The position numbers and the translations under genes are program-made. A stretch of DNA of 64,000 nucleotides from Epiperipatus broadwayi (lineage: Eukaryota; Animalia; Onychophora). Positions 359 through 63,513 of this stretch are shown here, one piece after another (the first letter of the stretch is position 1; each line of letters opens with the position of its first letter). Location: contig JAQFVV010000005.1 of assembly GCA_028023455.1 (NCBI GenBank), forward strand, positions 4,154,001-4,218,000, in the 5' to 3' direction. The notes under the pieces were generated by a model, which had not been told where the DNA came from, did no database searches, and was given only the letters and a program-made list of their open reading frames with translations.

Positions 359-3300
359 AATAATAAAATAGTTTATTACTCAGGAATTTATATGAAATTC
401 AAGCCTTGGCAATAACAATAGGACCATGATATATGGATCTGGGATCCAGAGTCCGCTACTCCGCCACAACACAAAATCGTGATAGAAATAATTTACAGAG
501 AATATTTGATGGTTTATTGGGTTTATTATATCTGTCTATCTAAAACAAAATAAATAAATCACTTTACAACTTATTAAAAAGCAACTATTATCTGGTCCAA
601 GTTTGAATCTAGGATGTAGCCATAGTAGAGACATGAACTATGGCTACATACATGATATTCTTCATTATTTACACGTAATTATATTATACATCAGTTAATC
701 AAGCTTAACATATTGAGCCAAATATTGTCAAACATTGCCAAGGCCATACTACATATAGATAAAAAATGGAAAACCACTTTTTATCCCCATCTAGGTTATA
801 TATATACACTAATAAAAAATTGAGTACTAATGGGGTGAAATTGCAGATCATCAAAAAAGTTTAAATGAATATTATATCACTCAGTCTAGATTAATGTAGG
901 CAAACTTGTATCAGGTTTCATTAACTTCTTAGTGAATTTATAATTTCATTCTGCTCTGTGTCTTAACCTTGTCATGGACAAACAAGGCAATTAAATCGAG
1001 GTTGTAACATTTAATGTTGCATACATGTGTCCTTCATAATGAATAATTATTTTATTAAAATGATTTTCTTAACTAAATTTAACTTCAAATTAATTTTAGA
1101 CAATACTAGAAGAATAAACATATTATAAAAGAATCAATTTATTTAAGGAAATAAAAAACAAGGTTTTTTTTATATTAGCCAGAGTAATATAACATTTTTA
1201 CTATATATCCACACCAGTTTAGATAATATATATATGCTTATGCTATAGCTCTGAAGAAGATTGCTAGACAGTCAAAACTGTAAAAATGTTTTGCCAAGTT
1301 GAATAAATTGTTGCACGGTAAAAAATATATAAAGAAAAGAGTATTTGTTTAATTGCTAAAATATCATATATTTTATATTTATAAAATTGGAATGTTTTAC
1401 AAATTATCAAAACAATCTAAAAAAATTATCTTGCAGTCATTCTAGTTGACAAAAAAACTTAAACAAGAGTTAGCATTTTGTGCAAAATGAAATCTGCAAT
1501 TAAATCTTACCTTTGAACTATAGAGGTTTATATTTTGCTACACCTGCCATCTATTAATAAAGGTAAAAAAATGAAGTATATAATGTTACCATTCATTTAA
1601 AAATATTTACAGTAAGATTTCAGTCAACTATCATTCAAGTATTCTCTGACTATATTGTGACTGACAAATTTAAGTAGAACTACCACCTTGAAATGACAAC
1701 AAATTTATCAATAAAAAATTATTCTTATTAACAGGTATGAGATTTCATTAAGTTCTTGGAAGTTTTATAATTTCACTTAAAAAAATTTCAACTGTTTACC
1801 ATATATTGTATATAACAACTCAGATGTGCATAGAAAATGGTGTTTTTTTTATGTATGTATAGAGTAACATTGTCAATCATCAGTGAAATTTAGTTAGAAA
1901 TGTTATTTGTGATGATTTTTTTAGCAGGTTACATAATTAAATATAATTGCTAGTTTAGCTCTTGGCATTTTTGATCTATATTCGCTTAACTAGTTCTAAG
2001 TATTTAACATTTAATTATAAATATTTTTATTTTAGATGAGGGCTCCATCTAATTCTCATACTAATTATGCTATTCATGCATTAATTATGCTAAGATGTTG
2101 ATATCATACTGCTAAATTGTCTAACTTCATAAATCTGAAACTATTTTTAAGTGCTATAAATGTTAGAACACTCTATTGATAACATTTTTATACTGAACTA
2201 ATTTTGTCTTGTGTGGCAATAATGACCATGGTGATAAAATTGGATAGACATGAAGACTTGTAGTTAGTTAAAAATTTCCCAGATAAGCTTTGAATTTAGA
2301 TAGTGTTAATACATTCAATTCATTAAATAAATATCTACAAATTTTATGTTGGGGAAGTAATCAATGTTTTAGGCAGTAGTCAAAGTCAGTCATTTAAATA
2401 TCAAAGTAATACCCAAATAACTTCTATGCATGAATAAAGGGAATGTTGACTCCTATAGTTATTAAACCTATATAATTTATTTTATCTTTATGATAATTTT
2501 CTGGGAGACACATATATTTTTCACAATAATTTACATGAAATGATATTTTGAAGAAATAATATCTTAATTCAGGAGTTAACCAAAAATGGTTAAAAGAAAG
2601 AAATACTAATGTTTATAATACTATTTATGATATATACATTTATCATTTAAGATATTGATAACCAATAATACAAACACAAAAATAGAATAAAAAAATATAA
2701 ATAAATACAGTTCAATTCTTTTACAACTACTGTCAATATAATAGTAATGATGAATTATTACCATTTTGTACCACCATTAATTAAACTTAAGAAAAATAAT
2801 ACAAAGTATTACTAAGATATATAAACAATCCAGATCAGAAATTAAATTAAACTCTTTATGTTGTGCATGTAATGATACTAAAATCCACGTCAGTAAATAA
2901 CATTTTTCCCAAGATGTTTAATGCATTTTTATTATTTTTGCATTCTCTATATTAAATAAATGCCTAAAATATTTTAATTCTTTTTTACATTTTTTTTTAT
3001 TTAATTCAATTACTGGATAATTTTTACTGTTACTAGTCTTTTTGAGAGCTGTTTTAAAACTAACTCCAAAAAAAATACACTCTCAGATTACTGAATTAAA
3101 TAAAACATTGGGAAAAGTATAAAGAAGAGAATGTTTTTAGATATTTAATTAAGTAAAATTTCTCTCAATATTTTTAATGGGATAATCATAAGTCATTCTT
3201 TCAGTGAGTTTTTAAAATTAATCCATAAAAAGTATATCTATATAAAACTTTTAATGTATCAACACATATAATTATAAACAAGGCAAAACTCTCCATACAG

Positions 3301-3380
3301 TAGTGTCACCCTGTGCCAACCAGAGTAATCAATGGATGCCAGAAGACTTGTGCATAAAATCCCTATCTAATGCCTGCTCA

Positions 3381-3437
3381 TCCAATATCCCCAGACTAGT
3401 TTCTGGCTTCTGGCCTTCGTCAGTGAGGAGCTTTGGG
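3381..3437 (-). ncRNA. Type I hammerhead ribozyme (family A), core intact
   Basis: Minus strand: CCCAAAGCTCCTCA-CTGACGA-AGGC CAGAA GCCA-GAAA-CTAG-TC-TGGGGATATTGGA. Stem I TCCTCA/TGGGGA. Confidence 0.8.
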
Positions 3438-3458
3438 TCTGAGAGCACTGCACCTAGA

Positions 3459-3515
3459 TCCAAAGCTCCTCGCTGATGTAGGCCACAAGCCAGAAACTAG
3501 TCAGGGGGTATTGGA
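3459..3515 (+). ncRNA. Hammerhead ribozyme (family A), degenerate
   Basis: CTGATGT (A9 changed) AGGCCACAAGCCA GAAACTAGTC AGGGGGTATTGGA. Confidence 0.6.
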
Positions 3516-3992
3516 TGAGTAGGCATTAGATATGAATTTTATGCACAAGCCTTTTTGGCATCCATTGATTACTCTGGTTGGCACTGGGTGGCACTATTGC
3601 ATGGAGAGTTTTGCCTTGTTTATAAACAATTATGTACTAGTATAAGAGATGGTGATCATGTGACATATAATTATACTTTAAATAGATATACACTTTACAG
3701 AAATATGTTTTGTAGAAATATCAGCTTAAATATGCATTGTAGGATTTATCGAATGATAGAATGGCATTGTCTGAGATTAAAGTGTTCCTCATTGGATTCT
3801 CCACAGAGTAAAATAAATCTTTAATTTGTGATCTACAAGTACTTGAGTTTGATATTAATAGAAAAGACTTCACTTTTTTCTAATATCTTAAAAGAACCAA
3901 ACAGATTAAGCTCCTAATGTGTATTTTATACATCTTGTCATTAAACTTGAAATTACCTTATGATTGATCATAAACAAAAATATAAGGATTGG

Positions 3993-4470
3993 TCACTGAT
4001 CCTCATCCACCAAGGTGATAAGTTTTTTTCTTAAAGAAATTTTATTCATTGCTATATTAAATGCTACAAATATAAAAATGACATCAATTACATATCTATT
4101 TGAGGCAAAGTAGATCCAACCTTCTCCCATGTTGCTTTTGTGATATAGCTTGGAGCAATTAGTCAGTCCCTCTTCATGATTTTCTCCCATAACTTTTTTG
4201 AATTTAATAGTGTCCATAAATAGACCCTGACCTACATAGTCATTAATTGATTTATAGTTTTCATTCATATTGCTGTACCATTCATGAGTTATCAATCTAT
4301 AATTGGACATACTGGGACATTTACTGGCTTAAAATGAAGAACTATCCATGAACTCAAGTGTCTGGGAGTTATTAAATGACACATCATTTGGATTTTCTTG
4401 AAAGCAGATGTGTATCTTTAAATGCTCATTCATTTTTATGCTTACAATGTAACAGTCAAAAAATAAACCA
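3993..4470 (-). pseudogene. Penelope-like reverse transcriptase fragment
   Basis: Frameshifted minus-strand translation ...LHFKPVNVPVCPIID... resembles the PLE RT start motif (HKPxVPxRPII), followed by the ORF-track peptide at 3993-4310. Confidence 0.5.
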
Positions 4471-4907
4471 TAGTTCTCTTGTCCATGGTATAAAATCAAA
4501 GATCAATGTAAAAAGTAGCAAATTATTCTAAGCACTTACCAGAATATAAATCTAGGATTTCATTCAATAATACCATCTTATTTGACTACTTATAACTATA
4601 GTTGACTTTTAAGTAAAAAAAAATTGTAAATTGAAAAAGTGGGCTATCAATAAAATTTCATAAATTTAAAAGAAATGGTGAAAAACCAATTTATTCGGAA
4701 AGTAGGCATGTATTTTACTATTATTAATGCACAAATATTGAAAATACAAGTAATGTAAGCTTTGTTATGAATATACAATTAGACAACATTGTTGAATTTT
4801 ATAGTAGATTAAACAGGAAAATAAGATTAATAATTTATCTTAATGGTAAATTATTCAACATAAGTAAAGAATTTTTATACAAATTCACAACATTCTTTGG
4901 ATCTAAC

Positions 4908-5715
4908 TGTAGTGTCTTTATCCTTGACTCTCAAATGGGCAAACAACAATTAATTAATAACTAAAACTAATTTAGTACTAAGGATTTATTATATGTTATA
5001 CAAAAACAAAACTGGAATACATATACAAACTTAAATATAATTAATACACACAGAAATAGGTGACCACAGGTTTCTAAAGCACTCTTCCAATATTGTCTGA
5101 TCATTACTATCTTATTTAATGGATTGTCACTTTCCACAACTATGCTAATAAACTACAAGTTCCCCCAAGTTAAAACCTAAGAACCCTTTAGGTTTACATA
5201 CAACAAAATAAGATCAGGACAATCTGCTTTAAATACTAGTCAGATTTTTATATCTTCAGATTCTGAAACATCTGGGTTTATTTCCTCACAGATGTTGACT
5301 TGTTACCAATGATACTCATTTTTAGCCCAATAGTACTTCAGCAACACAAAGGAGAAAAAAGCAGTTTAATCTACAATCCCCAAGTTTTTATTGTCTGCTG
5401 TTTAATTGTTCCCTTAGCAAAAATTTTCCATTCTTTAAAATTCTTTTGTGAAACCATTTAAATAATTTCACTTTTCAGATTTACTATTTTTATAAGATTT
5501 TTATTTTTATACTAATCAGTTCAAAATTTGATTTTCTGTTCTTTTCATTCAGTCTATAGAAACATTTTAATTACACAACTCTATTCATTTTCTTATATCT
5601 ATAACTCATTCCAAAACAGTTTCTATTGTCCTTAATTAGTACATTTAAATTTAACTTCTGGAGTATTCTTATTTATTTTTTATACTAAAATATTTATTGA
5701 AAATAAAATAGTACA
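4908..5715 (-). repeat. 3' LTR of Gypsy element (lacks about 370 bp present in the 5' LTR)
   Basis: Direct repeat of 9701-10976. Starts TGT after the PPT and ends ACA on the minus strand. Confidence 0.85.
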
Positions 5716-6249
5716 CTTCTTCTTCTCACTCCAGAAGTTGTAAATGTTTTTTACTCATAATCATTCCATCGTTCTGTTTTCTTTTGATACTCACAGGTCT
5801 GGGCAATTTATTTATTTCAGGTTTCACTTCATTTTTTTCTGCAACTTCACCAGTTTTCCTTGATTAACTGTTTTGCCTCTGTCTTTCTTTCTGTTTTGGT
5901 TCTTTCATAACTCTCCACCTCCTGCATATTTGCATTTGCCATATTTCCATCTGCAATTCCTTTGGTTCTCTTTTCTTTATATGTTTCATGTGGTGTTTGA
6001 ACTTTAAACCATTAATTCCACTAACAACATGTATTTGATTTGACAATATTTTGTCTACTGTTCCCTTATTTCCATCTAATGTTTCTCACCCACACAGGAT
6101 CACCAACTCTAAATGAATTACCTGGCTTCACATTTGGAACATTAATCTTTTCATTAGGATGCAAAAATGCCAATTTAGTCCTTAGTTTATGCTGGAGATT
6201 TTTCTGTCATTGTAGATGTCATTGAATGTTGGTATAGCATATATCTGTA

Positions 6250-8300
6250 ATGCATCGCTTTTCTACATTACTCATTTTTTTAAAACTTCTTTTTATTTGC
6301 TGCACCACACTCTCTAATAATCCACTTGACTGAGAATGATATGGAGTGTGCACACATGATTAATCCCATAGGTATAAAAAACTGTAACAATTCCTTTCCA
6401 GTAAACCCTACTCTGTTATCTGATACCATCACTTCTGCAAAAACCATGTATCAAGCAAAACAACTTTAAACACTAATTGTTTCCAAGGCACTAGTACCTT
6501 TCACTATATGGCATTCTATCCATCTTGAATGTGTCTGTAATTATTAGCAGAATTTTTTCATTCACTGGCCATGTATGATCAATATATACTTCCATACTTT
6601 GTTGCCTTTGCTCTGTATGCAAAATATTTCACAGGTTATGCACTTTTTGACTGACATGCAGCACAACCTTTAATGAATTTTTCTATATCTGCATTAATTT
6701 GCAGCCACCAAACATAGCTATGCACCAAAACTTTCACATGCACTATGCAAGAATGCCCTTCATGGAGAAGCTTTAAAACCTTATTCCTCCCTGCAGGTGG
6801 TATAACTACTCTATCCCCCATAGTACTATGCACCCCTACAAATAGATAACTACTTTCTATTAGCCTAAAACCCCACTGCCACATAACTAGGTCTAGTTTT
6901 AAGCCAGCCCGTCTTAAATCAAATTTATCACAATATCATATCATTTTTCTTTCCTAGTCCACTTTTGAACTATATTATTATTTAACACTTATGAGTTCAT
7001 GCTGTCAATATAATTAACATCAAACTCACTATTGCATGTCTTTTGACTATCTGGAAATCGTGACACTGCATCTGCATGCAAGATTTCTTTCCTCCATTTA
7101 TATTTTAATGAATAATCATATGCAGCTAACACATTCCACCATTGTAACATACACAGAATTAAATGTTCAGACAATGCATGGTTTGGTCATTTCCTAAAAT
7201 TCCCAACAAAGGCTTTTGATCAGTAATAATTTCAAAACTATGCCCCAAAACAAACTGATGATATTGTTTCATTGTGAAAAATGATCACCAAAGCTTCTTT
7301 GTCAATTTGACTGTAATTACCCTCCTTTGCTTTTGACAATGTTATGGATGTTTATGCAACAGGCCACTTGATATTATCTATAAGGTGAGTTAAAACAGCT
7401 CTTACCCCCCTCCCAGTCTGATGCATCAGTCATAATTCTAACTTCACATTCACTGTCAAAATATACCAACCTCATATCAGGTGATAACAGTTCTTTAGTT
7501 TTTCCAAAAGCCCTATCTTGAGTTTTTGACCAAACCTAACTTTGCCCTTTGTAGAATAACTCATATAATGGTTTTTCCACCACCATCTTATTTTTTAAAA
7601 ACAGCTTGATAAAATTAACTAGCACTAAAAATGCCTGAAGTTGCTTTATGTTCTTAGACCTTTCAGCATTTCTAACAGCTCTGACATTGTCCATTAAAGA
7701 ATATCTTCATTTACCTGAAATGCTGTGACCCAGAGATTTTAACTCTTGTGTCTTCCATACACATGTTTCATGGTTTAACTTAGTGATCACCTTATTTAAT
7801 TTATCACAAATTTTCAAAATTCTCTCTCTTAATGATTCACTAGATATTACTGTTATCAAAATAGCTTTATAATAAAGTGTTATCCCTTTTAATCCTTGTA
7901 ATTATCTTGTGTCTTCCATACACATGTTTCATGGTTTAACTTAGTGATCACCTTATTTAATTTATCACAAATTTTCAAAATTCTCTCTCTTAATGATTCA
8001 CTAGATATTACTGTTATCAAAATGGCTTTATAATAAAGTGTTATCCCTTTTAATCCTTGTAATTATACATTTAACTTGGCCTGAAAAATGGTTGGTGCTA
8101 TAGTAATTCCAAATAGTAAACAATTACATTTGAACAGCCCAGATGGTGTGGTTAGCATAAATATTATTGCTGAATTGTCCATAATTTCAATTTGATGATA
8201 TACTGAATTGATGTTCAATTTGGCTAAAAACTTTGCCTTAGACAAATTTCACTAAAACTTCTCTAATCTTTATTTAGAAATTTATTAACTGTCACATGGT
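6250..8300 (-). pseudogene. Gypsy pol (RT, RNase H, integrase) with many stops and frameshifts
   Basis: RT ...TPSGLFKCNCLLFGITIAPTIFQ; RNase H ...YDYSLKY...ADAVSRFP and D-A-S-D motif; integrase Zn finger RVVIPP...LHEGH...YVWW...CAACQ; integrase core VSDN. Confidence 0.9.
7745..8066. repeat. 161-bp near-identical tandem duplication inside the Gypsy RT
   Basis: 7745-7905 and 7906-8066 differ by about 1-2 bases. Confidence 0.95.
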
Positions 8301-8664
8301 AATCACTGTACATTCTGAATTTCATGTGGACATGACCCATTTTGCATCTTCTACAGATGCTAACACCTTTCTAGCCACCAACATTTTTAAAACTTTTCCT
8401 TGACCATTTTTCTCATCACAAATGGAATTTTCTGTAGCTTTCAAACCACCAGCTATAGGATTTCACTTAATTCTAAATATACCAAGTTTGCTTTTATTAA
8501 TCCTAACTTCTTACACCGCTCTCTATGGATTATTAAACTTCTTTGTCATTTAACAATATATACTGTCAAATAACAAGCTTTATTTCTATATGCAATTGGA
8601 GCATCTGCCATTCCAACCAATGCTAGTGAGTTTCTGTTTACATCTTAACTTTTATATCAGACAT

Positions 8665-9447
8665 TTAAATTTTAATCTTCTTATAACTTTTTGCTACTTC
8701 TTTCCATTGGCTTTCATACATCCATGAAATACCCAAACCACTATCAATCTCCATTTCCAGTTCCGCGCTATCTATTTTAAGTGTTAGCATATATTGATTT
8801 TGTGAGTGTGAAATCATACTCTTTTTAACTTCATATTGCTTACCTGTCCTTTGTTTGATTATTTCTTTTTTATCAATTGGCTTGGATGTTTTGCTAACTG
8901 TTGCTAAATGCACTCTGTTGCTGCAATTAAAACAGCTTTCTCGACACCATTTATAATTTTTTGCAAAATATTCTGTTTTCCAACAGCGAAAACATTTTCC
9001 TAAAGATATTGGTTCACTACTTGATTTATAATTTTTCTGTGGCCTACTTTTATTCATTTTATAAACTGTTGTTTTTCTCTCCTTGTCCACTTTACTTCTA
9101 AAAGTGAGAGCTTGCTCAATAATTAACTCATACACAATCTCTTTATTGATTGCTGATTCATAAGACAACTCCGTTTCCGTCAATAACATTTGTCTTAAAC
9201 TTTCATCTGCCATTCCCTATAGAAATTGATTCAACAAGATTTGTTCACCAAATTCTCCATACTGACCCTTTTTTACTAGCTGGTGTAAAGCTATATCAAA
9301 ATCCTTTATTTTTTCTTCTTTTGACTGGCTTTTATTGCAGAGTGCCAACCTAGTGATATGCCTAGATGTCCGCAAGCTAAAATGCTCTGTTAACTTATTA
9401 ACTATCATCTCATAATTTATTTCCTCTAACTTGTTAATAATTTTCAA
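8665..9447 (-). pseudogene. Gypsy gag and protease, frameshifted
   Basis: Gag ...KLTEHFS...DFDIALHQL; two degenerate CCHC knuckles (CFRCWKTEYFAKNY, CFNCSNRVHL); protease MEIDSG motif. Confidence 0.85.
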
Positions 9448-9700
9448 TTACTTTCCTCCTTGCCAAACACAACAATGCTGCTCCTTTCTACTACTCATGC
9501 CATTAAAATTCTTCCAAATTGCATCATATACAAAGGCCATTCCACTGCTTTTCCTATATTGAATTCAAAGATACTATCTTGACCTATCAACACTTTATCC
9601 ATGATTAAGTTATAAATCTATATGATTGCTTGACAATTCTAGTCCTACTTGTACTATTGATTTCCCTATCTGCCAAATTTCTGACTGCACCATTTTCTTG

Positions 9701-10976
9701 TGTCTTGTCTTTACCCAGAACTCTCGAATAGGCAAATCGCAATTAATTAATAACTAAAATGAATTTAGTACTAAGGATTTATTATATGTTATACAAAAAC
9801 AAAACAAGAATATATATACAAACTTAAAAATAATTAACATACAGAAAAATAGTTGATAACAGAATTTCTAAAACTCTTTAAACACTCTTCCAATATTTCA
9901 GCCCATATATCTAAAAAATACCCTAACAGCTATGATTTCAAATTCCAATTGCACTATGTCATTTATCTAAACATAATTCTAACACAAATCATTGATCAAG
10001 AAGCTATCCAATGCCTATATATCAGAGGATTGAAACCCCATTGCTACTCCTATCACCAGCAGGATCATTTAACAGTGCAATATGCTAATCTCCAAACTTC
10101 ACTTTCTAAGAAAAACAGCTGATCACCTAAATTCCCAAAACAACAAATAACAATCAACAGCAAATTTTTTCATGATTACATCCATCAATAGCCAAGAATT
10201 TATCTACATGCATACTACCTATCATGTACACTCATTCACACTCAATCTTGATCCACCACCTGTTCATTTGACACTCCATGAGACAGTCTTATTTATTGGA
10301 TTGTCACTTTCCATAACTTTATTAAATAAATTAGAAGTTTCCCAAGTTAAAATTTAAGAGCCCTGTAGGCCTACATAAAACAAAATAAAATCAGGATGAT
10401 CTGATTTAAATACTAATTAGATTTTTATATCTTCAGATTCTGAAACATCTGGGTTTATTCTTTTGCAGACATTCACTTGTTACCAAAGATACTCATTGTG
10501 AACACAAAAGCACTTCACCAGCACAAATAAGAAAAATAGTCTGCTGTTTAATTGTTCCTTTAAATTTTCCACTCCTTAAAATTCCTTTGCAATATCATTT
10601 AAATAATTTCACTTTTCAGATCTACTATTTTCATAAGATTTTATCTTTACACTAATCACTTCAAACTTTGCTCTTCCGATCTTTTTATTCGCCTGTAGAA
10701 ACCTTTTAATTATGCAATTCTATTTTTTTATATCTATAACTCATTCCTAAAACAGTTTCCCTTATCATTAATTAGTACATTTAAATTTAACTTCTGGAGT
10801 ATTTTTATCGATTTTTTTATACTAAAATATTTATGGAAGTCAAGCATTGTTAGCCAAGAAGTTAGTGCAGTCACCTTACAAGGAAGCAATTGGTTGCAGA
10901 CGGTTGTTGTGGGTTCGCCTCCTGGCCGATGCTATGACATATGAAAAAAAATATTTATGGAAAGTAAAATACTAAA
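9701..10976 (-). repeat. 5' LTR of Gypsy element, interrupted by a SINE
   Basis: Homologous to 4908-5715. Followed on the minus strand by TGGTGCAGTCAG, a possible degenerate PBS at about 9681-9692. Confidence 0.85.
10839..10947 (+). mobile_element. tRNA-derived SINE (family S1)
   Basis: GTCAAGCATTG...GGGTTCGCCTCC (B-box-like)...ATGACATATGAAAA. 15-bp TSD AAAATATTTATGGAA at 10824-10838 and 10948-10962. Absent from the other LTR. Confidence 0.88.
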
Positions 10977-12078
10977 TTAACCAAACTAAATTTTAAAATT
11001 ATCAAAGGATTTCAATATTATGAATGGAAAACCACTGAAAGATGAAGATACTTTGGTTAAATTTGGATACAGAATCAAGCTATAAACTTCTAGAATGTTC
11101 AGGAAAAATAAGTGATGTATTATGATGAAAGTATAACAGATTTACATTATATCTTGACTAACAAAAATGTATATTAACTCAATAATTTGTTTACTAAATT
11201 TGTGCAGAAAATGATTACTTATTAGAAGAATATAAAATATATTTAAATGCAAAACCAGAGAGATAAGATTATTGAAAATCATAACATCGAAGATTGATAT
11301 TCTTAATTTTTCAAAAATTTAAAATACAACTTTAAAAAATAATTTAAAATGTTTTGAAAATGATTAGGACATAAATGAGAGCAAGAAGAAGATAACAGAG
11401 ATTCAAAATATGAATTGATACTATAGATAACAGGAAAAATTTACTTGAAGTGAATGGTATATAAATGAAATAATATTACAGAATGATTCATAAAGCAAAA
11501 ATTATCTATTAAATATTTAAATGATAAAGAAATAAAAGAATACAACAATTATATATATAATATTGTTGAAGAAGACTAGTTTTCATTCATGTTCTATAAA
11601 ATTGACAAGCATTTGCCCATCAATTAATGTTTTAAAAGCATAGGCTTTCATCCATGCTTAGGGTTTATTCTTTAAATAAACCAAATTTACTGACTGTGCC
11701 TAAATTAGGGCCTGAACCTATTATGAGACTGATTTTTAAATTGGAAAAATTAAATTGCACACGTTCAGTTTATAAATCACAGTAAAAAAAAAAGTTTCTA
11801 ATTTTTAACTACCCATCATGCTAAATCTTATTAGTGTGAATATATGTAATAATTAACAATATAGCAATTTTATAAATATGTAACACTATGGAAGGAAACT
11901 AGTCTTCACACATGTGCTATAGAATTGACAAACACTATACCATCAATAAAGGTTTTAAATTTATAAGTGGTCCACCTAGGTTTAAAGCTTATAATTCTGT
12001 AAAATCATATAGATAAAAGTTAATAATTAATATTAAAATAATAATAATAATAACAACAATACAACCTCAACAACAGCA

Positions 12079-13474: not shown

Positions 13475-13518
13475 ACCAATATACGTATTTCATGCTAAAC
13501 CAGCAATCATCAGTTGGT
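13475..13518 (-). ncRNA. Minimal type I hammerhead ribozyme (family F), core intact
   Basis: ACCAA-CTGATGA-TTGCT GGTTT AGCAT-GAAA-TACGTA-TA-TTGGT: 5-bp stem I, palindromic stem III, UA cleavage site. Confidence 0.82.
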
Positions 13519-17400: not shown

Positions 17401-18238
17401 ATAAAAGAATAGGTAAATTTATAAACTTATTTAAATCTATAAACTTTTGAGACCTTAGTTTAAATTTAATTAAATTGTGTTATACCTAAAGACTTTCCAT
17501 TCCAATATTTTATCATGCCATTTATGTGTTATAAAGCATTAGCACCTACCATTTATTTATTAACCTTAACATATTTATTGAATCTTTTTTTTTGTAAGAG
17601 CTATTTGATTTTTTTTAAAGATTGCAAATGATAGCAAGCTATGGAAATACAGTTTTTAATAATTTGATTTTGATTAATGATCACATCAATAGATTACCCC
17701 AGAAATCATTATTGTTCTAGGGGAATGAATTAATATGAAATTGAAATCTGAGGATATCAGCAAGTTTGTGAAATGCTTATTTGGATCAAATATTAAAATG
17801 CAAAAAGCTTAATACCTCTGATTGGTTGCTTATCAGAGCTAGGATTTGATTATGGGTTTGTATTATGAATTTAATTAAAATATAGTAGCAGTTATTAAGG
17901 ATTTTAAACCACAATTCACATTTGTTATGATGTATATCACTTATACATATAAAAATAATTTCACAACATCTGTAATGCATTTGAGATTTTTACACCTCAT
18001 AATTTAAAGATATATAATGCAACATACAGGAATGTTTACTATTTATGTGTTTGTCTTTAGATTTACAAGAAAATTTGATATGAACCATTAAACATCACAT
18101 AATCACTATTTCTTAGGCTTTCACAAACTGTTTACACAGAGGCTGAACTCTCCATACAGTTGTACTACCAGTGCAATCCAGAGTAATCAATGGATACAAG
18201 AAAATTTGTGCATAAAATCCCTGTCTAGTTTCTACTAA

Positions 18239-18296
18239 TCCAATATCCTCAGACTAGTTTCCAGCTTGTGGATTTCATCAGTGAGAAACTTTAGAT
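18239..18296 (-). ncRNA. Hammerhead (family A), stem II degenerate
   Basis: CTGATGA AATCCACAAGCTG GAAACTAGTC TGAGGATATTGG. Confidence 0.55.
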
Positions 18297-18447
18297 CTGA
18301 AAGAACTGCACCTAGCTAATGAGATTATATTGAAAATATTATTGTGTTTTCATTTTGAACTCAAAGCTTTATAGTTAGATAATAAGGTAAAAGGTGGCTG
18401 CTGGAGGATTGCATTAGATCCTAAGATCTAAGTGCAGTTCTCTCAAA

Positions 18448-18504
18448 TCCAAGGTATCTCACTAATGAAAGCCACAAGCCAGAAACTAGTCTGAGGATAT
18501 TGGA
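18448..18504 (+). ncRNA. Hammerhead (family A), degenerate core CTAATGA
   Basis: CTAATGA AAGCCACAAGCCA GAAACTAGTC TGAGGATATTGGA. Confidence 0.55.
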
Positions 18505-18900
18505 TGAGTAGGCACTATATAGGGATTTTATGCATAAACTTTCTTGTATCCATTGATTATTCTGGCTTGCTCTGGTGACAACACTGTATGGAGAGTTTAG
18601 TCTCTGTGTAAGCAGCTTGTGTAAGCATAATAAATGGTGATCATGCATTATTTAGTGGTTTAAAACAAATCCTGCCCAATAGTATTCTGGTGGTTCTGCT
18701 TATTAAAGAATCAAAGACACCAAAAAATATGGATGCTGAACTGAGTTCAGATTTATACAATTATACAAACTAATGAGCTTGAATTAAAAAAATTATTGTG
18801 TTTTCATTTTGAAACCAAAGCTTTATAGTTAGCTAATAAGTTAAACTTGGCTGCTGGAGGGTTCCATTAGATCCTAAGATCTAGGTGCTGTGCTCTCAGA

Positions 18901-18957
18901 TCCAAGGCTCTGCACTGATGAAAGCAACAAGTTAGAATCTAGTCTGGGGATATTGGA
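18901..18957 (+). ncRNA. Hammerhead (family A), degenerate (GAAT)
   Basis: CTGATGA AAGCAACAAGTTA GAATCTAGTC TGGGGATATTGGA. Confidence 0.55.
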
Positions 18958-19399
18958 TGCATAGGCACTAGATGGTGATTTTATGCACAAACCTTCTTGC
19001 ATCCATTTATTACTTTGGCTTGTACTGGTGGTACTACCGTATGAAGAGTTTAGCCTCTGTCTAAAATTTGATACAGTTATCATTATGCACTTTATTTATG
19101 ATATATATTTTAAAATATTTGTTACGGTTTGCTAATATACACATTTGCTTATATAATTATGTAGATGCTGATGATGTACTAGGAAATGATTAAATGGGTA
19201 TTGATATGACCACTAATATAAAAAACTGGTAATAATTAGCATGTGCGACTTGAGCCAGATCATATTGAGTTCTTGTATGATAAGAATGGTATTCAAAATA
19301 TTTGCACACACATCCCAAGCTTTGTCTAATCAACAGCAACAGTGTTATATACGCATATTTAAATATATTAGAAAATAATCAAAATAAAAAATAAAAAGA

Positions 19400-22879: not shown

Positions 22880-24080
22880 TTAATAAGACGTCATATGACA
22901 GTGCCAGTTTCCCTTAGCATATGCTTTCATAACTTAATTATAAATTTATTAACGCACATTGATTACGTAAGTAATGTTTACCGTGGCTGTACCCTCGAGA
23001 ATATGCGTGTAAAATGCGATAGTAGGGACCTCTACAGGTGTTTAACCACAAGCTTACGCTATTGTGAAAGAAGTTAATAGGTCATCTCAGAAGTTAATAT
23101 GTCTTCTCTTCGTGCACGTATATAATATTGTATGATGAAATAATTAACACAGAAAACATTTATGCTAATGATTTAGGATTTGAATTTCATGTCACTTGGA
23201 GATTTTTTCAGACAAATGAGAATTTCCCAAATCTTAAGATGGTTTCAGTTAGCCTGCCTTTAGAAAGTGATTAGGAAATAGGAGAGTACAGAAACAAAGA
23301 AAATCAAGATCCACCAATTAGCAGTTTCCTGGCTTATTATATGATTTTTTCCCCCACAATTCTTTGTGAAAACAAGTCCGATTTACGTCAGCTACTTTCG
23401 ATTGCTTTATTTTTTTTTCCCAATTTTCATAACATGGATTCATCAGACTAGTATTAAAATGCACAAACAAACAACGGTGAAAGTCTTAATATTTTTTAAC
23501 TATGTAAAGACCCTAAAATGTTTGATGTCCGCTAGCTGTATTAATAAAAATCTGAATTCTTCTCTTGGAAATAATCCTTTATTATTTTCTTCTAAAAATG
23601 TGATTGAAATAAAAATTTTACTTAAAAGAAATATTTTCATGTACATACAGTGACAACACTAACGCTTATATATAGAATTTTATTACGACTGAATTTAATT
23701 ATCACAAATAAAATATTCCTCTTATCTTCCCTGGAGAAATTAATTGATGTGTGAAAGTAATCTTGTTATTAATGAGGCGATATTTAAATTTCTTATTGAC
23801 TTATGGGTATTCTGAATTGTATTAATATATTTATTATTTCTACACTAATTCCCATTTCATAAAGAAAAGTTTTAAAAATGTATCACAATATTTTATTATA
23901 ATGAAATTGATAATAACTAAAATGTACAATAGACACTCAAATAAGGAAATTAAAGCAAGTTTGACATATAATTAAGGACACTCTTGCATTTTAAACAAAT
24001 GATCGTTAACGTTGAACCGCAGTAAGCTAAAGAGTCCCAAGATGCATTTCGACGATCATGTATCCTTAGTAGGATTAACT
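22880..24080. promoter_or_regulatory. CpG-rich patch (candidate unmethylated promoter region)
   Basis: About two dozen CpGs by eye, versus very few in 26-29 kb; contains GACGTCA and donor-like sites on both strands. Confidence 0.4.
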
Positions 24081-24480
24081 CTACATAGTTATCTAAATGT
24101 TGTACATTATAGTTTTGTACTTATTGGTATAAATTACCCAAACATAGTTTTTGTGCAATATTTTCATACATCCTTATTGATAATAATCATCTTTCAATAA
24201 ATATATAAATGATTATTAAGCGCTTTTATTTCATGAAAAATTACATTTAATGTCATCTTACATATAAACTTATATATATAGTACAAAGAAATTAAAAGTT
24301 TTAAAAAGCAGAAATTATCAACACCCCTATATAACATCACATGACCACCATCTCTTATGCTTGTGTATAACTGTTGTTAAAACTGGTAAACTCACTATAC
24401 GTATGCCACACACAGCAAGCTAGAGTAATCAATGGATGCCAGAAGGCTTGTGCATAAAATCCCCATCTAGCACCTACTCA

Positions 24481-24537
24481 TCCAATATCCCCAGACTAGT
24501 TTCTGGCTTGTGGCCTTCGTCAGTGAGGAGCCTTGGA
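24481..24537 (-). ncRNA. Type I hammerhead ribozyme (family A), intact
   Basis: TCCAA GGC TCCTCA-CTGACGA-AGGC CACAA GCCA-GAAA-CTAG-TC-TGGGGA TA TTGGA; predicted cut between 24494 and 24493. Confidence 0.85.
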
Positions 24538-24933
24538 TCTGAGAGCACTGCATCTAGATCTTAGGATCTAATGCAACCCTCCAGCAACCACCTTTTATCT
24601 CCATTTAACTACAAAACTATGAGTCTTAAACCGAAAACACCTTAATGTTTCCAATTCAAGCCCATCAGCTTATATAGTTATATGGGTCTGAACTCAGTTC
24701 AGTTCCCATACATTTTAGTGTCTTTGGTTCTTTAATAACCATAGCCACCAATATCTTATTAGGCAGGATTGGTTTTAAGCCAATAAACATCACATGACCA
24801 CCATCTCTTATGCTTGTGTATAACTGTTGTTAAAACTGGCAAACTCACTATACGTATGCCATACACAGCAAGCTAGAGTAATCAATGGATGCCAGAAGGC
24901 TTGTGCATAAAATCCCCATCTAGTGCCTACTCA

Positions 24934-24990
24934 TCCAATATCCCCAGACTAGTTTCTGGCTTATGGCCTTCGTCAGTGAGGAGCCTTGGA
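24934..24990 (-). ncRNA. Type I hammerhead ribozyme (family A), intact
   Basis: Same fold with loop CATAA; predicted cut exactly 453 nt from the previous one. Confidence 0.85.
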
Positions 24991-25153
24991 TCTGAGAGCA
25001 CTGCATCTAGATCTTAGGATCTAATGCAACCTTGAATTGGAAACATTAAGGTGTTTTCGGTTTAAGACTCATAGTTTTGTAGTTAAATGGAGATAAAAGG
25101 TGGTTGCTGGAGGGTTGCATTAGATCCTAAGATCTAGATGCAGTGCTCTCAGA

Positions 25154-25210
25154 TCCAAGGCTCCTCACTGATGAAGGCCACAAGCCAGAAACTAGTCTGG
25201 GGATATTGGA
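25154..25210 (+). ncRNA. Type I hammerhead ribozyme (family A), intact
   Basis: TCCAAGGCTCCTCA-CTGATGA-AGGCCACAAGCCA-GAAACTAGTC-TGGGGATATTGGA; predicted cut after 25197. Confidence 0.85.
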
Positions 25211-25480
25211 TGAAAAGGCACTAGATGGGGATTTTATGCACAAGCCTTCTGGTATTCATTGATTACTCTAGCTTGCTGTGTGTGGCATACGTATAGTGAG
25301 TTTTCCAGTTTTAACCCCTATATAAAAAATGTGATTGAGGATTGCAATTACCTGTCACTTCTATACTAAAAGATAATTGTGATGCAGGTAAGTTTGAGAC
25401 AAAAAGTGTGCTGATAAAAATAAGGCACTTAAAAACATAAGATGACACAAGGATTATCTACTCTTTCACAAGGTACTTAC

Positions 25481-25540
25481 TAGAAGTAGTAGAAATCAGG
25501 TTCTGCATTGACAGAAAGTGCATTATTAAAAAATATTGAA
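25481..25540 (-). CDS. Candidate 60-nt exon of an unidentified host gene
   Basis: Acceptor ttttttatcag and donor gtaagt; two open frames (SIFFNNALSVNAEPDFYYF or QYFLIMHFLSMQNLISTTS). Confidence 0.35.
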
Positions 25541-25788
25541 CTGATAAAAAAAGCCTGTAGATTCCATTATTAATGTCTCAAAGTCATGTAATGAGCAAAA
25601 TTTATTTGCAAAAAAAACAGAGATAGTCAGAGCAGTGAACCTGTAATTTCTAAGCTGATGGATAGTTACACTGGAAAAAAATAAATAAATAATAATATTA
25701 TCTAAACTTATTAATGCCTATACCTCAGATAAAATAAAATATAATAATTTTTAATAATTGAGGTTTTACTTCATTCACAATTTATAAC

Positions 25789-39586: not shown

Positions 39587-39884
39587 GCTGGGTCTCTAAA
39601 AACTAGATCTAAAATACTAACTCAAAAGTCAGCACTTATAAAACACGTTTCTATCAATTCAAAAGTCTGAACTTTTTGGAAGTGTAAATGTCTTCAAATC
39701 CAGCTTTGCAAACCAGATAGTTATATGGGTCTAAATTCAGCTCCATGTAGCTATCTGGTTTGCAAAGCTGGATTTGAAGACATTTACATGTCCAAAAAGT
39801 TCAGACTTTTGAATTGATAAAAATGTGTTTTATAAGTGCTGACCTTTAAATTAGTATTTTAGATCTACTTTTTAGAGACCCAGC

Positions 39885-53821: not shown

Positions 53822-54063
53822 TAAACCACTAAACATCACATGATCACCGTCTCTTATGCTAGCACATAACTGTTATTAAACAGGCAAAACTCTCCATACA
53901 GTAGTGCCACCCTATGACAACCAGAGTAAGCAATGGATGCCAGAAGGCTTGTGCATAAAATCCCCATCTAGTGCCTACTCATCCAATATCCCAGATTAGT
54001 TTCTGGCTTGTGTCCTTTGTCAGTGAGGAGCCTTGTATCTAAGAGCACTGCACCTAGATCTTA
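53822..54063 (-). mobile_element. Family A single arm with degenerate hammerhead (53982-54037)
   Basis: Homologous to 24335-24560; core CTGACAA and GAAACTAATC mutated. Confidence 0.88.
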
Positions 54064-55001
54064 GCATCTACTACAATGAATTAATTTGTTTCACAAAGAC
54101 ATTCTTTTCATTATTAATTCATTGCCACATACAATGAAGTACATATACTTAGGGACAATATGGTTACAGCTTTGAACAAGGTTACCATTCAAAGCAACCA
54201 TTTAAGAAGAAAGGTATAATATAAAACTAAAAATATAAATGTAAAATTAATTCCTGGATGTAATGTACAGTTTGATTTTAGTAAAAATTAAACTTAAATT
54301 TTTGAAGTAAAAAAATTATAAACAAAATTATTCTCAAACCATTTCTTGGCCTTTCCGCAAATTATTGTTCATTAATACCATTATGTGCTGTTTGTTTTTG
54401 ACTAATCCATATTATCAAAAGGGGTTTTCATTTTTTCAGTGACATGATAATCTGCTCAATTTGAACATTTTTTCACAGTTTGTGCAATGTTTAACCATTT
54501 ATTTTATAAAAAGGTGCAGATGTTGTGTTTTACATCAAATTTAGAACTTAAATCACTAATTCTTTTATCACTTTATCTTTTTTAAAAAATGATCTTTATC
54601 TTAACCTCAATACTAATTAGTTTTGTGAATCTATATTTCTGACTAATGAATAAAACTATTTTTTATTAAATGTATAAATAAAATTAAAACTAATAAAGTT
54701 AAACAAATTGCAGAATAAAGACTAAACTCTAATACACCTTACATGACAAAAATGAGTCATATTTTACTTAATACTAAAATATTCTAAAAATATTAGCACC
54801 TGTCATTTCTATATTTTTAAATATTTGTAATATTTTTTATTTCTTCCAATAATATTTGGTCATTCCTTAATTAAGATTTAAGTCATTTTTATCTTATTTT
54901 CAGTTTTAAATTATTTCTTTTTTAACATTAATGTGAATATGTTATTAAATTCTGCTTTTGTAAATAATCAAGAAGTTACCTGAAGCCTTTGTCTATGATT
55001 G

Positions 55002-56546: not shown

Positions 56547-56754
56547 CATATACACATGACCACATACATGTGAAAAATATAAGTGATTATCAAATATACA
56601 TATTTTATGCTAAATCAGCAGTCATCAATTGGTGGTCTGGATCATCATCTCCCATATATATATATAATCAGACCAACTGATGAAATGCTGGTTCAGCACT
56701 AAATACATATTTTGGAGATCATTTATCTTTTTTACATGTGATCATATGTATTGG
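56547..56754. mobile_element. Family F fold-back with two degenerate hammerheads
   Basis: Homologous to 13445-13550; plus copy ACCAA CTGATGA AATGCTG GTT CAGCAC TAAA TACATA TT TTGG at 56672-56715. Confidence 0.8.
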
Positions 56755-58421: not shown

Positions 58422-59967
58422 TAACTTTGCTAAAAAAAATTGTTTCTTCACCTGCTTTGTTTAATATATCAATTATAATTCCATCATTTCCTGGAGCCTT
58501 TCCTGTCTTCATACATTTAATTGTATGTCTCACTTCTTCATTTAACATTCTAGGCAATTCGGAAGATGTAATAAATATAGGAGGTATTTGTTCTTTATTA
58601 CCGTATAATTTTTGATGTCTAAATAATAAAGATGTACCAGATGATTGGAAGAATGCAGTATTAATATTAATATTTTAAAAAGTGATAAAGAAGATATTAG
58701 AAATTACAGACCCATCGGCCTTTTATTAGTTTTATACAAAATTTTTACCAAGATAATTACAACTCATCTACAGAGAACATTGGATTTCCACCAACCAAGA
58801 GAACAAGCTGGATTTAAAAGTGGTTTTAGTACAGTAGATCATATTCAGGTATTGAAAGAAGTTATAGAAAGGACAGATGAATATGAGTTGTCATTATGTT
58901 TTGGATTTGTAGATTATGAAAAGGCATTTGATTCTATAAGCATTTCTTCAGTGATTAAAGCATTGGATCATCAAGGTGTAGATCCAGGATATTGTCATAT
59001 TTTAAAGAATAAAATGCAACAGCAACAATTTGATTACATAATGATACTGGGAAAGTCAGCATTGAGAACAGTGTAAGACAGGGTGACTCCATATCTCCAA
59101 AACATTTTACAGCAGTGCTGCAAGAAGTATTTTGTGGATTAAAATGGAAATCTAAATGAGTGAAAGGAAATGGAGATTATTTAAGTCATTTAGATTTTGC
59201 AAATGATGTAGTTGTGTTTGCAAATAATGCTTTAAAGCTGCAGGAAATGTTACAGGAGTTATCAGATAAATAGGACTAAAGATAAATGTTAACAAGACTA
59301 AAGTAATGTTTAATGGATTTTCTCAAAATATGAAAATAAAAGATTGATTATGATGAATTAGAAGAAATTGACAGTTACAAATACCTTGGTCAGATTATTA
59401 ATACAGATGGAAACATAATGGATGAAATTAATCATAGAATTAAACTTGGTTAGAGTGCTTTTGGAAGAAATAACTTGATACCAAAAGAAAATATGCCTAT
59501 GTGTTTGAAAAGGAAGGTTTTTAATAAATGTGTTTTGCTAGTTTTTACTTATGGATCTGAGATTTGAACACTTAATAGAAGAGCAATACAGAGACTTCAG
59601 ATCATCCAAAGAAATATGGGGAGATGCATGTTGGGAGTAACAAGAAAAGTTCGAAAATTCAACATATGAGTAAGAGAACAAACAGGTGATATTGACCTCA
59701 TTGAAAAATTAAAAGACTGAAGTGGAGTTGGGCTGGACATATTGCTAGAAGAGATGATAATAGATCGACAATTGACATCTTAAACTGAATTCCAAGAGAT
59801 TGTAAAAGACCCAGAAAGAGACCACATGTGGGATGGATGGATGAAATAAGAAAGTGTGCAGGGGTGATGTGGAAAAGAGAAGCTAAAGATTGGAGAAGAT
59901 GGATTGAACTTGGAAAGACCTTCATCCTGCAGTGTATTGATAATAGTTGATGATGGTGATGATGATG
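58422..59967 (+). mobile_element. RTE-clade LINE, 5'-truncated with 5' inversion
   Basis: RT motifs NYRPIGLL, QPREQAGF, FVDYEKAFDS, RQGDSISP; (GAT)n tail; minus-strand segment 58422-58618 encodes EEV...KTGKAPGNDG; TSD ATAAGTAAACA at 58411-58421 and 59968-59978. Confidence 0.92.
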
Positions 59968-60957: not shown

Positions 60958-61110
60958 ACCAAACTCTCCATACCATAGTGCCATGAAGTGCAAGCCTTGG
61001 TAATCAATGGATGGTTTATGCAAAAAATTGTTATCTGGTACCTACTTATCCAATATCCCCAGTCTAGTTTTTAGCTTGTGGTTCATCAGTGAGGAGCCTT
61101 GGATTTGAGA
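60958..61110 (-). mobile_element. Family A arm with degenerate hammerhead (61049-61103)
   Basis: CTGATGA ACCACAAGCTA AAAACTAGAC TGGGGATATTGGA. Confidence 0.8.
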
Positions 61111-61334
61111 GTATATATTTTAATAAAAATATATTTTCTTCTTTTAAAAACTTTTACTGAAACAGTTGAATAAATGTATTTGTTTCTTCTTCATCTTCTT
61201 CCTCCCCCTCCTCTTATTATTATTATTAGTAGTAGTAGTAGCAGTAGCAGTAGCAATAGTATTGTGCAAAACTTTGCTCATTTAAAAAAAGTTGTTAGAT
61301 GATAAGCTATACTTTACTAGTATCATTATCTCAT

Positions 61335-61548
61335 TAAAACATCATATGATCACTTTCTCTTATGCTTACACAAAATTGAGGGCACTGTTGTCATATCCAA
61401 GACTTTAAATAATGATACCCATAAAGTAGAAACTAGGCTGGTGATATTGAATTAGAAACCCTTATATAGGGATTAAAATGCACCTCTAGCATCTATTGAT
61501 TACTAAATCTTGCACTAGGTGGCATTATTGTGTGGAGAAATTTGCTAC
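61335..61548. mobile_element. Old family A fold-back fragment
   Basis: CATCATATGATCAC... arm, then the inverted arm GAAACTAGGCTGGTGATATTG...TGGAGAAATTTGC. Confidence 0.6.
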
Positions 61549-61905
61549 AAGAGAATATACATGTAAATGGAAAAATATGGGGGATTTATTTTGTAAATTA
61601 TGTAAGGAAGGAATAGAAAATATTAGGCATTTGTTAATTGAATGTATATGCTTGAAAACAGAAAGGGTACATATAATGAAGTTATGGAAGAATATGAAAA
61701 AAGTGATTATACAGAAAGTGAATTATTGGTTTTTATGCTGGGTTTGTGAAAAGATAAAGGGGATTTAGATATAAAGGTTATAGAGTTGACAAAGATTATG
61801 TTGTGGAAATGGGATGGAACAGAATATGGGAAAGTTTAGAGTAGGGAATGGAAAATAAAGTGGCTAACAGGTTTATCTGTGCATAATTGCTGAGATATTC
61901 TCGAC
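61545..61905 (+). mobile_element. LINE 3' fragment with CCHC zinc finger
   Basis: CKLCKEGIENIRHLLIEC; same family as 14033-14465. Confidence 0.78.
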
Positions 61906-62750: not shown

Positions 62751-63217
62751 TACTTTTAATGTGTCCGTTCTATTTTTTTTTCCAAGTTGATTATTTTTTG
62801 CATTTTCTTTACAATAATAATGTTAATTTTAAATGCTTCATTATAAAAATTAATTGTTAATCCTTTTATAAAAAAAAAAGTCCTAAATTATTCATTTTTT
62901 GTTTAACACTTTTGATGTGACATTCTAATTTTTTGCTTCTGAGATATGCATCATTAAAAATGCAAATAACATAATTATACAAGAAAATAATTAATTAAAA
63001 CAATTTTTTTTTTCAAAATTTCACTATAATTGTCATAATAATTTGGGGTCAGTTTTTTTAACATAGAGGTCATATACTAAAGTTTAAAAAAAAATCTACG
63101 TACAATTTTCTTTATGAAAAAGTTTTTAATACATTTGGATTAACAATAATACAAAAGCAAGAAAACTGTTATGTTGATTAAGTTAAATTACATATAAATA
63201 ATTTATTGCTTTCTGTA

Positions 63218-63513
63218 CATCACATGATCACCATCTCTTATGCTTGCTCATAACTGTTATTAAAACAGACAAAACTTTCCATATGGTAGTGCCACTCAGT
63301 GCAAGCCAGAGTAATCAATGGATGCCAGAAGGCTTGTGCATAAAATTCCTATCTAATGCCAATGGATGCCAGAAGGCTTGTGCATAAAATCCCTATCTAA
63401 CACCAATGGATGCCAGAAGGCTTGTGCATAAAATCCTTATCTAATGCCTACTCTGCACAAGACTTCTGGAATCCATTGATTACTCTGGTTTGCACTGAGT
63501 GGCATTTTGCCTA
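63218..63513. mobile_element. Family A fold-back insertion lacking the HHR, with a 44-bp triplication
   Basis: Starts CATCACATGATC; 9-bp TSD CTTTCTGTA at 63209-63217 and 63514-63522; 44-bp unit at 63317, 63361 and 63405. Confidence 0.9.

Follow-up and report, generated by a model that had tools for sequence, protein, structure and literature searches.

A 64,000-nt stretch of the genome of the onychophoran Epiperipatus broadwayi (contig JAQFVV010000005.1, positions 4,154,001 to 4,218,000; hereafter the window, whose own coordinates are used throughout) contains a dispersed repeat, family A, with a unit of 453 nt that includes a hammerhead ribozyme (HHR) motif. Our conclusion is that family A is probably a non-coding animal retrozyme of the kind without long terminal repeats (LTRs), non-autonomous, and copied into its sites by the reverse transcriptase (RT) and GIY-YIG endonuclease of a Penelope-like element (PLE). 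This reading is supported by the anatomy of the insertions together with the structure of the motif. The insertions have target-site duplications (TSDs), an HHR-bearing tandem that resembles the pseudo-LTRs (pLTRs) of PLEs, an inverted 5'-truncated arm and a one-sided tail of ~40 nt, all of which bear out the original prediction that the repeat is a retrozyme or a non-autonomous Penelope family. Retrozymes and non-autonomous Penelope elements are treated as the same in the current literature (PMC7229834; bioRxiv 10.64898/2026.07.22.740005), and family A belongs to a known kind of element, not to a new kind.

Structure of the family A insertions

The 24-kb copy of family A had been described as a plain tandem array. 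We find instead a composite of 981 bp (24334-25314) between 10-bp TSDs, consisting of 1.54 tandem units on the minus strand (24334-25031) and an inverted arm of 284 nt, or 0.63 unit. The locus had been correctly recognised at 24335-25313, its limits being shifted to 24334-25314 by the TSDs. HHR-bearing sequences of 244 nt flank a body of 209 nt in the manner of pLTRs, and the inverted, 5'-truncated copy lies upstream in the sense of the ribozyme. The parts of the insertion are listed below.

24324-24333: left TSD, CCCCTATATA; the string occurs exactly twice in the window, at the flanks of the element
25315-25324: right TSD, CCCCTATATA; its border with the element is uncertain by 1 nt
24334-24786, minus strand (HHR sense): full 453-nt unit, 3' end toward the left TSD; head-to-tail junction at 24786/24787
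24787-25031, minus strand: 5'-truncated upstream unit of ~245 nt (positions 244 to 1), HHR-bearing and pLTR-like, 98% identical to its counterpart in unit 1
25031-25314, plus strand: inverted 5'-truncated arm, unit positions 326 to 42, without the last 41 nt; inverted repeat I1, 285 nt, 97% complementary
24334-24375, minus strand: tail, ~41 nt of the unit 3' end, at the left end only; symmetric arms 24376-24660 and 25031-25315
24476-24541, minus strand: predicted type I HHR, core CUGACGA 24523 to 24517, GUC 24496 to 24494, predicted cut 24494/24493
24929-24994, minus strand: predicted type I HHR, core 24976 to 24970, GUC 24949 to 24947, predicted cut 24947/24946
25150-25215, plus strand: predicted type I HHR of the inverted arm, core CUGAUGA 25168-25174, GUC 25195-25197, predicted cut after 25197
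24494-24946, minus strand: predicted 453-nt monomer RNA between the two minus-strand cut sites, fold z -6.8

The arms of this insertion are 96-98% alike and its TSD is intact, which agrees with the earlier suggestion of recent mobility. The suggestion does not extend to the 3-kb copy, with arms 89% identical, or to the 18-kb copy, with arms 82-85% identical, so that among family A copies only the one at 24 kb would appear to be young.

The window as a whole is repeat-rich, with a G+C content of 27%. With the unit as query (24335-24787), blastn returns copies at 3286-3663, 18093-19022, 24335-25315, 53834-54076, 61000-61525 and 63218-63505, and self-comparison of the window represents family A as repeat families D1-D6 and D9 and the inverted pairs I1, I3 and I4. 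A 30-nt pattern of the HHR core, allowed up to three mismatches, matches seven times in the window and not once in shuffles, while alignment of the ribozyme region (alignment A1) brings together ten HHR-homologous segments; the element has no open reading frame (ORF) of more than 48 aa and is non-coding. The original estimate of about ten HHR copies of a non-coding repeat was therefore accurate, as was the 453-nt spacing, seen by pattern and repeat analysis at two independent loci: between the minus-strand HHRs at 24494 and 24947 in the 24-kb insertion, and in families D3 and D6 at 18 kb. Tandem Repeats Finder does not list a 453-nt repeat, because there are fewer than two full copies. The remaining family A loci in the window are the following.

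3277-3663: older insertion, head-to-head 5'-truncated arms 3277-3460 (minus) and 3445-3663 (plus); TSDs CATATAATTATA at 3265-3276 and 3664-3675; tail on the right arm
18081-19062: older insertion, tailed arm 18081-18315 (minus) head-to-head with 1.65 tandem units 18314-19062 (plus); TSDs AAAATTTGATA at 18070-18080 and 19063-19073
53823-54076, minus strand: solo copy with 5' truncation, comprising unit positions 242 to 1 and then ~11-14 nt of the adjoining unit; mutations in the HHR core
61000-61525: old degraded head-to-head pair, 61000-61111 (minus) and 61428-61525 (plus), from blastn and the alignment of HHR segments
63205-63505: 3'-end fragment of family A lacking an HHR, and next to it a derived 44-nt x3 tandem, from the tandem-repeat scan, blastn and alignment

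The composite insertions at 3, 18 and 24 kb have TSDs of 12, 11 and 10 bp respectively, each string being confined to its two flanks in the window, and in all three the arms lie head-to-head with their 3' ends toward the flanks, an arrangement also present at 61 kb. A partial tandem accompanies the inverted arm at 24 and 18 kb; the 3-kb insertion consists of inverted arms only. In each of the three a tail of 41, 43 or ~53 nt (range 41-54) is found on one side only. The tailed end falls at the 3' terminus of the unit or up to 11 nt past it, and is present also in the solo copies at 54 and 63 kb, while the tail-less end stops at unit positions 42-47 in all three cases, coinciding within ~4 nt (alignment A2). 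The unit junction is also crossed in two more copies, at 18081-18092 and 53823-53833. The ends of the insertions lie 115-160 nt from the predicted cut site, and the unit has no LTR structure.

Some observations on these loci stand apart. The composites at 24 kb (24334-25314; 697+284) and 18 kb (18081-19062; 235+749) measure 981 and 982 bp although their junctions differ, which may be chance; we found no rule behind the equal lengths among sums of arm-end positions or pairing partners in the rod. At the tail-less ends (3277, 19060-19065) the first 3-5 nt of the TSD can also be read as element, namely TTATA at 3 kb and AAA at 18 kb, with C at 24 kb. Such overlap is possibly priming microhomology, and is also expected by chance in an AT-rich genome. 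The tandem at 63316-63448 comprises three 44-nt units (93% matches) that come from an internal piece of family A, at unit positions ~96-140. Finally, the old copies at 61.0-61.5 kb sit between an RT fragment of a long interspersed nuclear element (LINE) and a zf-RVT domain.

The hammerhead motif

Read from its 5' end, the plus-strand motif (25150-25215) consists of distal helix I (AUCCAA), an internal loop (GGC), proximal helix I (UCCUCA), the core C3-A9 (CUGAUGA, 25168-25174), A10.1, stem II (GGC, loop CACAA, GCC), A11.1, G12 A13 A14, then A15.1 C15.2 U A G16.2 U16.1 C17 (25191-25197), and on the 3' side UGGGGA, loop UA and UUGGAU. Helix I has 6 bp, the internal loop GGC/UA and 6 further bp (AUCCAA/UUGGAU). 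Stem II has 3 bp, its loop being CA(C/U)AA across copies. Helix III could reach 2 bp at most, with a 2-nt loop, and in practice is one pair (A15.1-U16.1) capped by the palindrome CUAG, such that ACUAGU is self-complementary. To judge by the order of these parts in the sequence, the motif is a type I HHR. The minus-strand motifs (24541-24476 and 24994-24929) are the same except for C at N7. All of the parts that had been claimed are found, namely CUGA(C/U)GA, the stem II loop, GAAA, CUAG, GUC, the 6-bp stem I and the internal loop with UA.

Each monomer had also been said to carry an HHR. The motifs were indeed recovered, yet core and stems are intact in only 4 of the 10 copies, those with the full conserved core in the full order at 25168-25197 (plus) and at 24523-24494, 24976-24947 and 3423-3394 (all minus). 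The other six are disabled by substitutions that include G5A, G8A, A9U and A15.1U, or by disruption of stem II, which is what one would expect of old, dead copies. Using a descriptor of our own (exact core, stem II of at least 3 bp, helix III short or palindromic, stem I of at least 5 bp), we detected five motifs in the window, four of them in family A; 300 dinucleotide shuffles averaged 0.04. The fifth is a complete and unrelated match at 13480-13513 (minus), with CUGAUGA, a 5-bp stem II, GAAA, the palindrome UACGUA and a UA cut site. It lies in another repeat, whose related copies at 56553-56671 and 56664-56740 form an inverted pair at 56.6 kb.

Animal HHRs usually have a helix I of 6 bp and a helix III of 1-2 bp whose small loop is palindromic, and are active as dimers (PMC4209133). 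The family A motif has the 'canonical metazoan' form, with a 6-bp helix I and internal loop, whereas the minimal PLE variant has a helix II of 7-8 bp. Short-helix-III HHRs are known from axolotl and newt, where one axolotl family is mismatched at the base of helix II (PMC7229834). Of these satellite ribozymes, HHR_Amex1 and HHR_Amex2 resemble family A in their one-bp helix III and palindromic tetraloop, implying action as a dimer; the mismatch at the helix II base is A.A in family A and U.U in Amex2, and the sequences are unrelated. Exact-pattern scans for the family A core gave zero matches in metagenome and viral contig collections, full-text matches in the literature were to unrelated primers only, and the searchable supplement text of two de la Pena papers contained no match.

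Sequence variation was examined among copies and in run contigs. At pair 10.2-11.2 a G-C to A-U double change occurs in two copies. In 15 runs from ~10 coded organisms, 5-43% of the sampled 31-mers of the element are present; in four runs the unique flanks (23900-24155 and 25308-25691) have zero depth and 279-1,303 contigs are at least 99% alike to the element. The contig layout carries no information on strand, ends or circles, and the run contigs show a high-copy family common to close relatives. Among the sites listed within C3-C17, those variable at 10% depth or more are N7, 10.2, 10.4, loop 2, 11.2 and loop 3; none of the 12 invariant core positions is among the variable sites listed across thousands of run contigs (hypergeometric p ~0.03).

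The predicted 453-nt monomer (minus strand, 24946 to 24494) has a minimum free energy (MFE) of -158.7 kcal/mol, compared with -116.5 +/- 6.2 for shuffles (z -6.8), in a structure where a long imperfect duplex has HHR helices I and II at its base. The strong fold is specific to the HHR-sense strand, the antisense value being z -2.7, and the fold signal is lost in the old 18-kb monomer (z -0.5). A two-sequence consensus fold keeps the outer duplex with seven double changes, though from two sequences only. When two 66-nt motifs are cofolded, they swap helix I and do not extend helix III, an outcome that is neutral as regards a double hammerhead. In the Rfam comparison the region 24904-25240 resembled microRNA genes of the plant families MIR7533 and MIR4240 on both strands, at 119 and 56 bits where the gathering thresholds are 230 and 200. 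We regard these matches as artefacts, since they mirror the inverted repeat of 200-285 nt.

Source of the insertion machinery

The traits reported for PLE insertions are frequent 5' truncation, partial tandems that form pLTRs, an inverted 5'-truncated copy at the 5' end, a tail of 30-40 bp that is often one-ended, TSDs of variable length, and HHRs in the pLTRs (PMC8557442). Formation of pLTRs and of head-to-tail insertions is noted for non-autonomous PLE derivatives too (Craig et al. 2021, PMC8557442), and PLEs are the proposed mobilisers of metazoan non-LTR retrozymes. Like PLEs (PMC8557442; Cervera & de la Pena 2014, PMC4209133), family A has a pLTR-forming tandem, an inverted 5'-truncated copy, a one-ended extension, a variable TSD and an HHR in the pLTR. 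Its loci match PLE anatomy: all four of the traits that they share are on the published PLE list. Unlike PLEs, family A has no RT/GIY-YIG ORF and a unit of just 453 nt, and its tail is 41-54 nt rather than 30-40 bp.

The likeness to metazoan non-LTR retrozymes (Cervera & de la Pena 2020, PMC7229834; Li, Clavereau & Pollet 2026, 10.64898/2026.07.22.740005) is close. Family A shares with them AT-rich, non-coding units of a few hundred bp with a type I HHR in each, the lack of LTR, primer-binding site and polypurine tract, TSDs of more than 4 bp (here 10, 11 and 12) and a highly self-paired predicted monomer. It differs from them in that its loci consist of 1.5-1.65 tandem units and an inverted arm, with no long arrays, and in being known here from sequence alone. 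The unit had been placed toward the long end for such monomers; this is true when the 170-400 nt of PMC7229834 are the yardstick, but the 2026 preprint gives a range of 51-972 bp, which includes 453 nt.

A further comparison is with the Sm-alpha element of Schistosoma, a short interspersed nuclear element (SINE) transcribed by RNA polymerase III (Pol III) that bears an HHR. Both are dispersed short retroelements with a type I HHR. In contrast to Sm-alpha, family A has no tRNA-like module, has T4 runs on its sense strand, and shows PLE-like insertion anatomy and not that of a simple SINE. As a separate observation, a hairpin AUGGGAACUGAACUGAGUUCAGACCCAU (24674-24700, sense on the minus strand; 39717-39743) is the sole stretch common to family A and a separate hammerhead family B at 39-40 kb. 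It holds a B-box-like AGTTCAGACCC, yet ARAGORN found no tRNA-like Pol III module and the sense strand has several T4 runs, which are expected to stop Pol III.

Several of our results weigh against the conclusion that family A is a PLE-mobilised retrozyme. An Infernal search with the Rfam hammerhead models had been named as a check in the original prediction, and it was negative: the whole window has no match at gathering score, and slices of 1.2 kb and 111-121 nt give no hammerhead or other ribozyme family at E<=10. Pair 10.1-11.1 is A.A where G-C is usual. Statistical support for covariation within the window is weak: in the motif helices 93% of cells pair, versus 24-44% with the partner slid, yet shuffles reach the observed values among these 10 related sequences. 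The isolated 66-nt motif folds no better than shuffles, and the MFE structure of the U7 variant is not the HHR fold. Contigs covering the element number 2,508-12,016 in four runs that are only guessed to be RNA, DNA being possible, and those listed (108-281 nt, depth 2-75) in many cases run into other flanks or into the 3' region of another subfamily. No PLE RT or GIY-YIG is found among the 24 ORFs of at least 75 aa in the window. Pfam scans of 22 ORFs detect a LINE-type RVT_1 (58645-59076, plus, 1e-12), a zf-RVT (61496-61768, plus) and Integrase_H2C2 of an LTR element (6636-6884, minus, 5e-12). As regards Rfam, its models seem to overlook HHRs whose helix III has 1-2 bp, an inference we draw because the unrelated descriptor-positive HHR at 13480-13513 is missed too; and the A.A pair has a precedent, given the mismatch at the base of helix II in the axolotl family.

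Three other origins have to be weighed. We think it unlikely that family A is a SINE-like element moved by a LINE, with inverted arms made by twin priming and the HHR a mere passenger. Target-primed reverse transcription of the L1 type, when accompanied by twin priming, yields variable TSDs, 5' truncation and head-to-head inverted arms, all of which family A displays, and the RT and zf-RVT remnants at 58645-59076 and 61496-61768 place a LINE in the window. However, the unit shows no similarity to that LINE by blastn, and the 3' end of family A lacks a poly(A) or simple-repeat tail. Nor does the start of the inverted arm vary: it is fixed at unit positions 42-47 in three independent insertions. 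Furthermore, the arms overlap in content, one of them exceeding the length of the unit, and the combination of one-sided tail, partial tandem and HHR is a specific PLE signature.

It is less probable still, in our estimation, that the copies are 5'-truncated terminal pieces, that is, pLTRs, of a full-length autonomous PLE. After heavy 5' truncation most PLE insertions retain the terminal repeat only, and the 5' limits that recur at unit positions 217-244 might represent the edge of a pLTR. Against this, a coding PLE would have a period of several kb, whereas head-to-tail junctions at 453 nt occur at two independent loci, two more copies cross the unit junction as noted above, and the unit contains no ORF. 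Very improbable, to our minds, is a satellite or segmental repeat spread by recombination, or a DNA transposon of the foldback or miniature inverted-repeat (MITE) type, with the hammerhead-like motif a relic or chance resemblance. Failure of Rfam to recognise the motif, mutation of core or stems in 6 of the 10 copies, and the microRNA-like hairpin matches arising from long inverted arms would all suit such an origin. The copies are, however, dispersed among different flanks with perfect TSDs of three lengths, where a DNA transposon would have TSDs of fixed length, and their termini are asymmetric and not true terminal inverted repeats. Complete descriptor matches are ~100 times rarer in shuffles, and a MIR score of 119 against a gathering score of 230 is a mere reflection of the inverted repeat.

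A putative circular or multimeric template

If family A is indeed a PLE-mobilised retrozyme, a transcript of more than one unit, from the minus strand at 24 kb, would hold two HHRs 453 nt apart. These should cut best together, as a double hammerhead, because helix III is A15.1-U16.1 with the palindrome CUAG and ACUAGU is self-complementary. The released RNA would fold into a stable, highly paired structure and could be circularised by a host tRNA ligase, after which circular or multimeric RNA would serve as template for target-primed reverse transcription, started at each of the two 3'-OH ends that a staggered break provides. Such a template would explain the longer-than-unit arms, the inverted arms, and the ends at 115-160 nt from the cut site. 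Since the insertion ends lie that far off, priming apparently did not take place at the terminus of a linear monomer released by cleavage, and we infer that a circular or multimeric RNA fits better than a linear one.

We further suggest, tentatively and in the knowledge that it may well prove wrong, that copying of this ribozyme-processed RNA, circular or multimeric, starts from both DNA ends of the break and that the second priming site is a defined one. The proposal arises because the inverted arm starts at unit positions 42-47 in three insertions and the first arm at the unit 3' end +/- 14 nt, neither being at the cut site. It would tie retrozyme circles mechanistically to the PLE 'tail', a link that is not described in the literature examined. 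Were it true, family A would be a clean, small model for the tandem and inverted structures of Penelope type, and the near-equal lengths of the two composites (981 and 982 bp) might reflect a constraint and not chance.

Mobilisation of animal retrozymes by PLEs is a proposal that has been based mainly on co-occurrence and on similarity of pLTRs in vertebrates. A 453-nt HHR element that shows the complete insertion signature of PLEs at single-locus resolution, in a genome very rich in A+T, constitutes independent structural support for it, and family A offers a compact substrate for studies of dimer-dependent hammerhead cleavage and of PLE integration.

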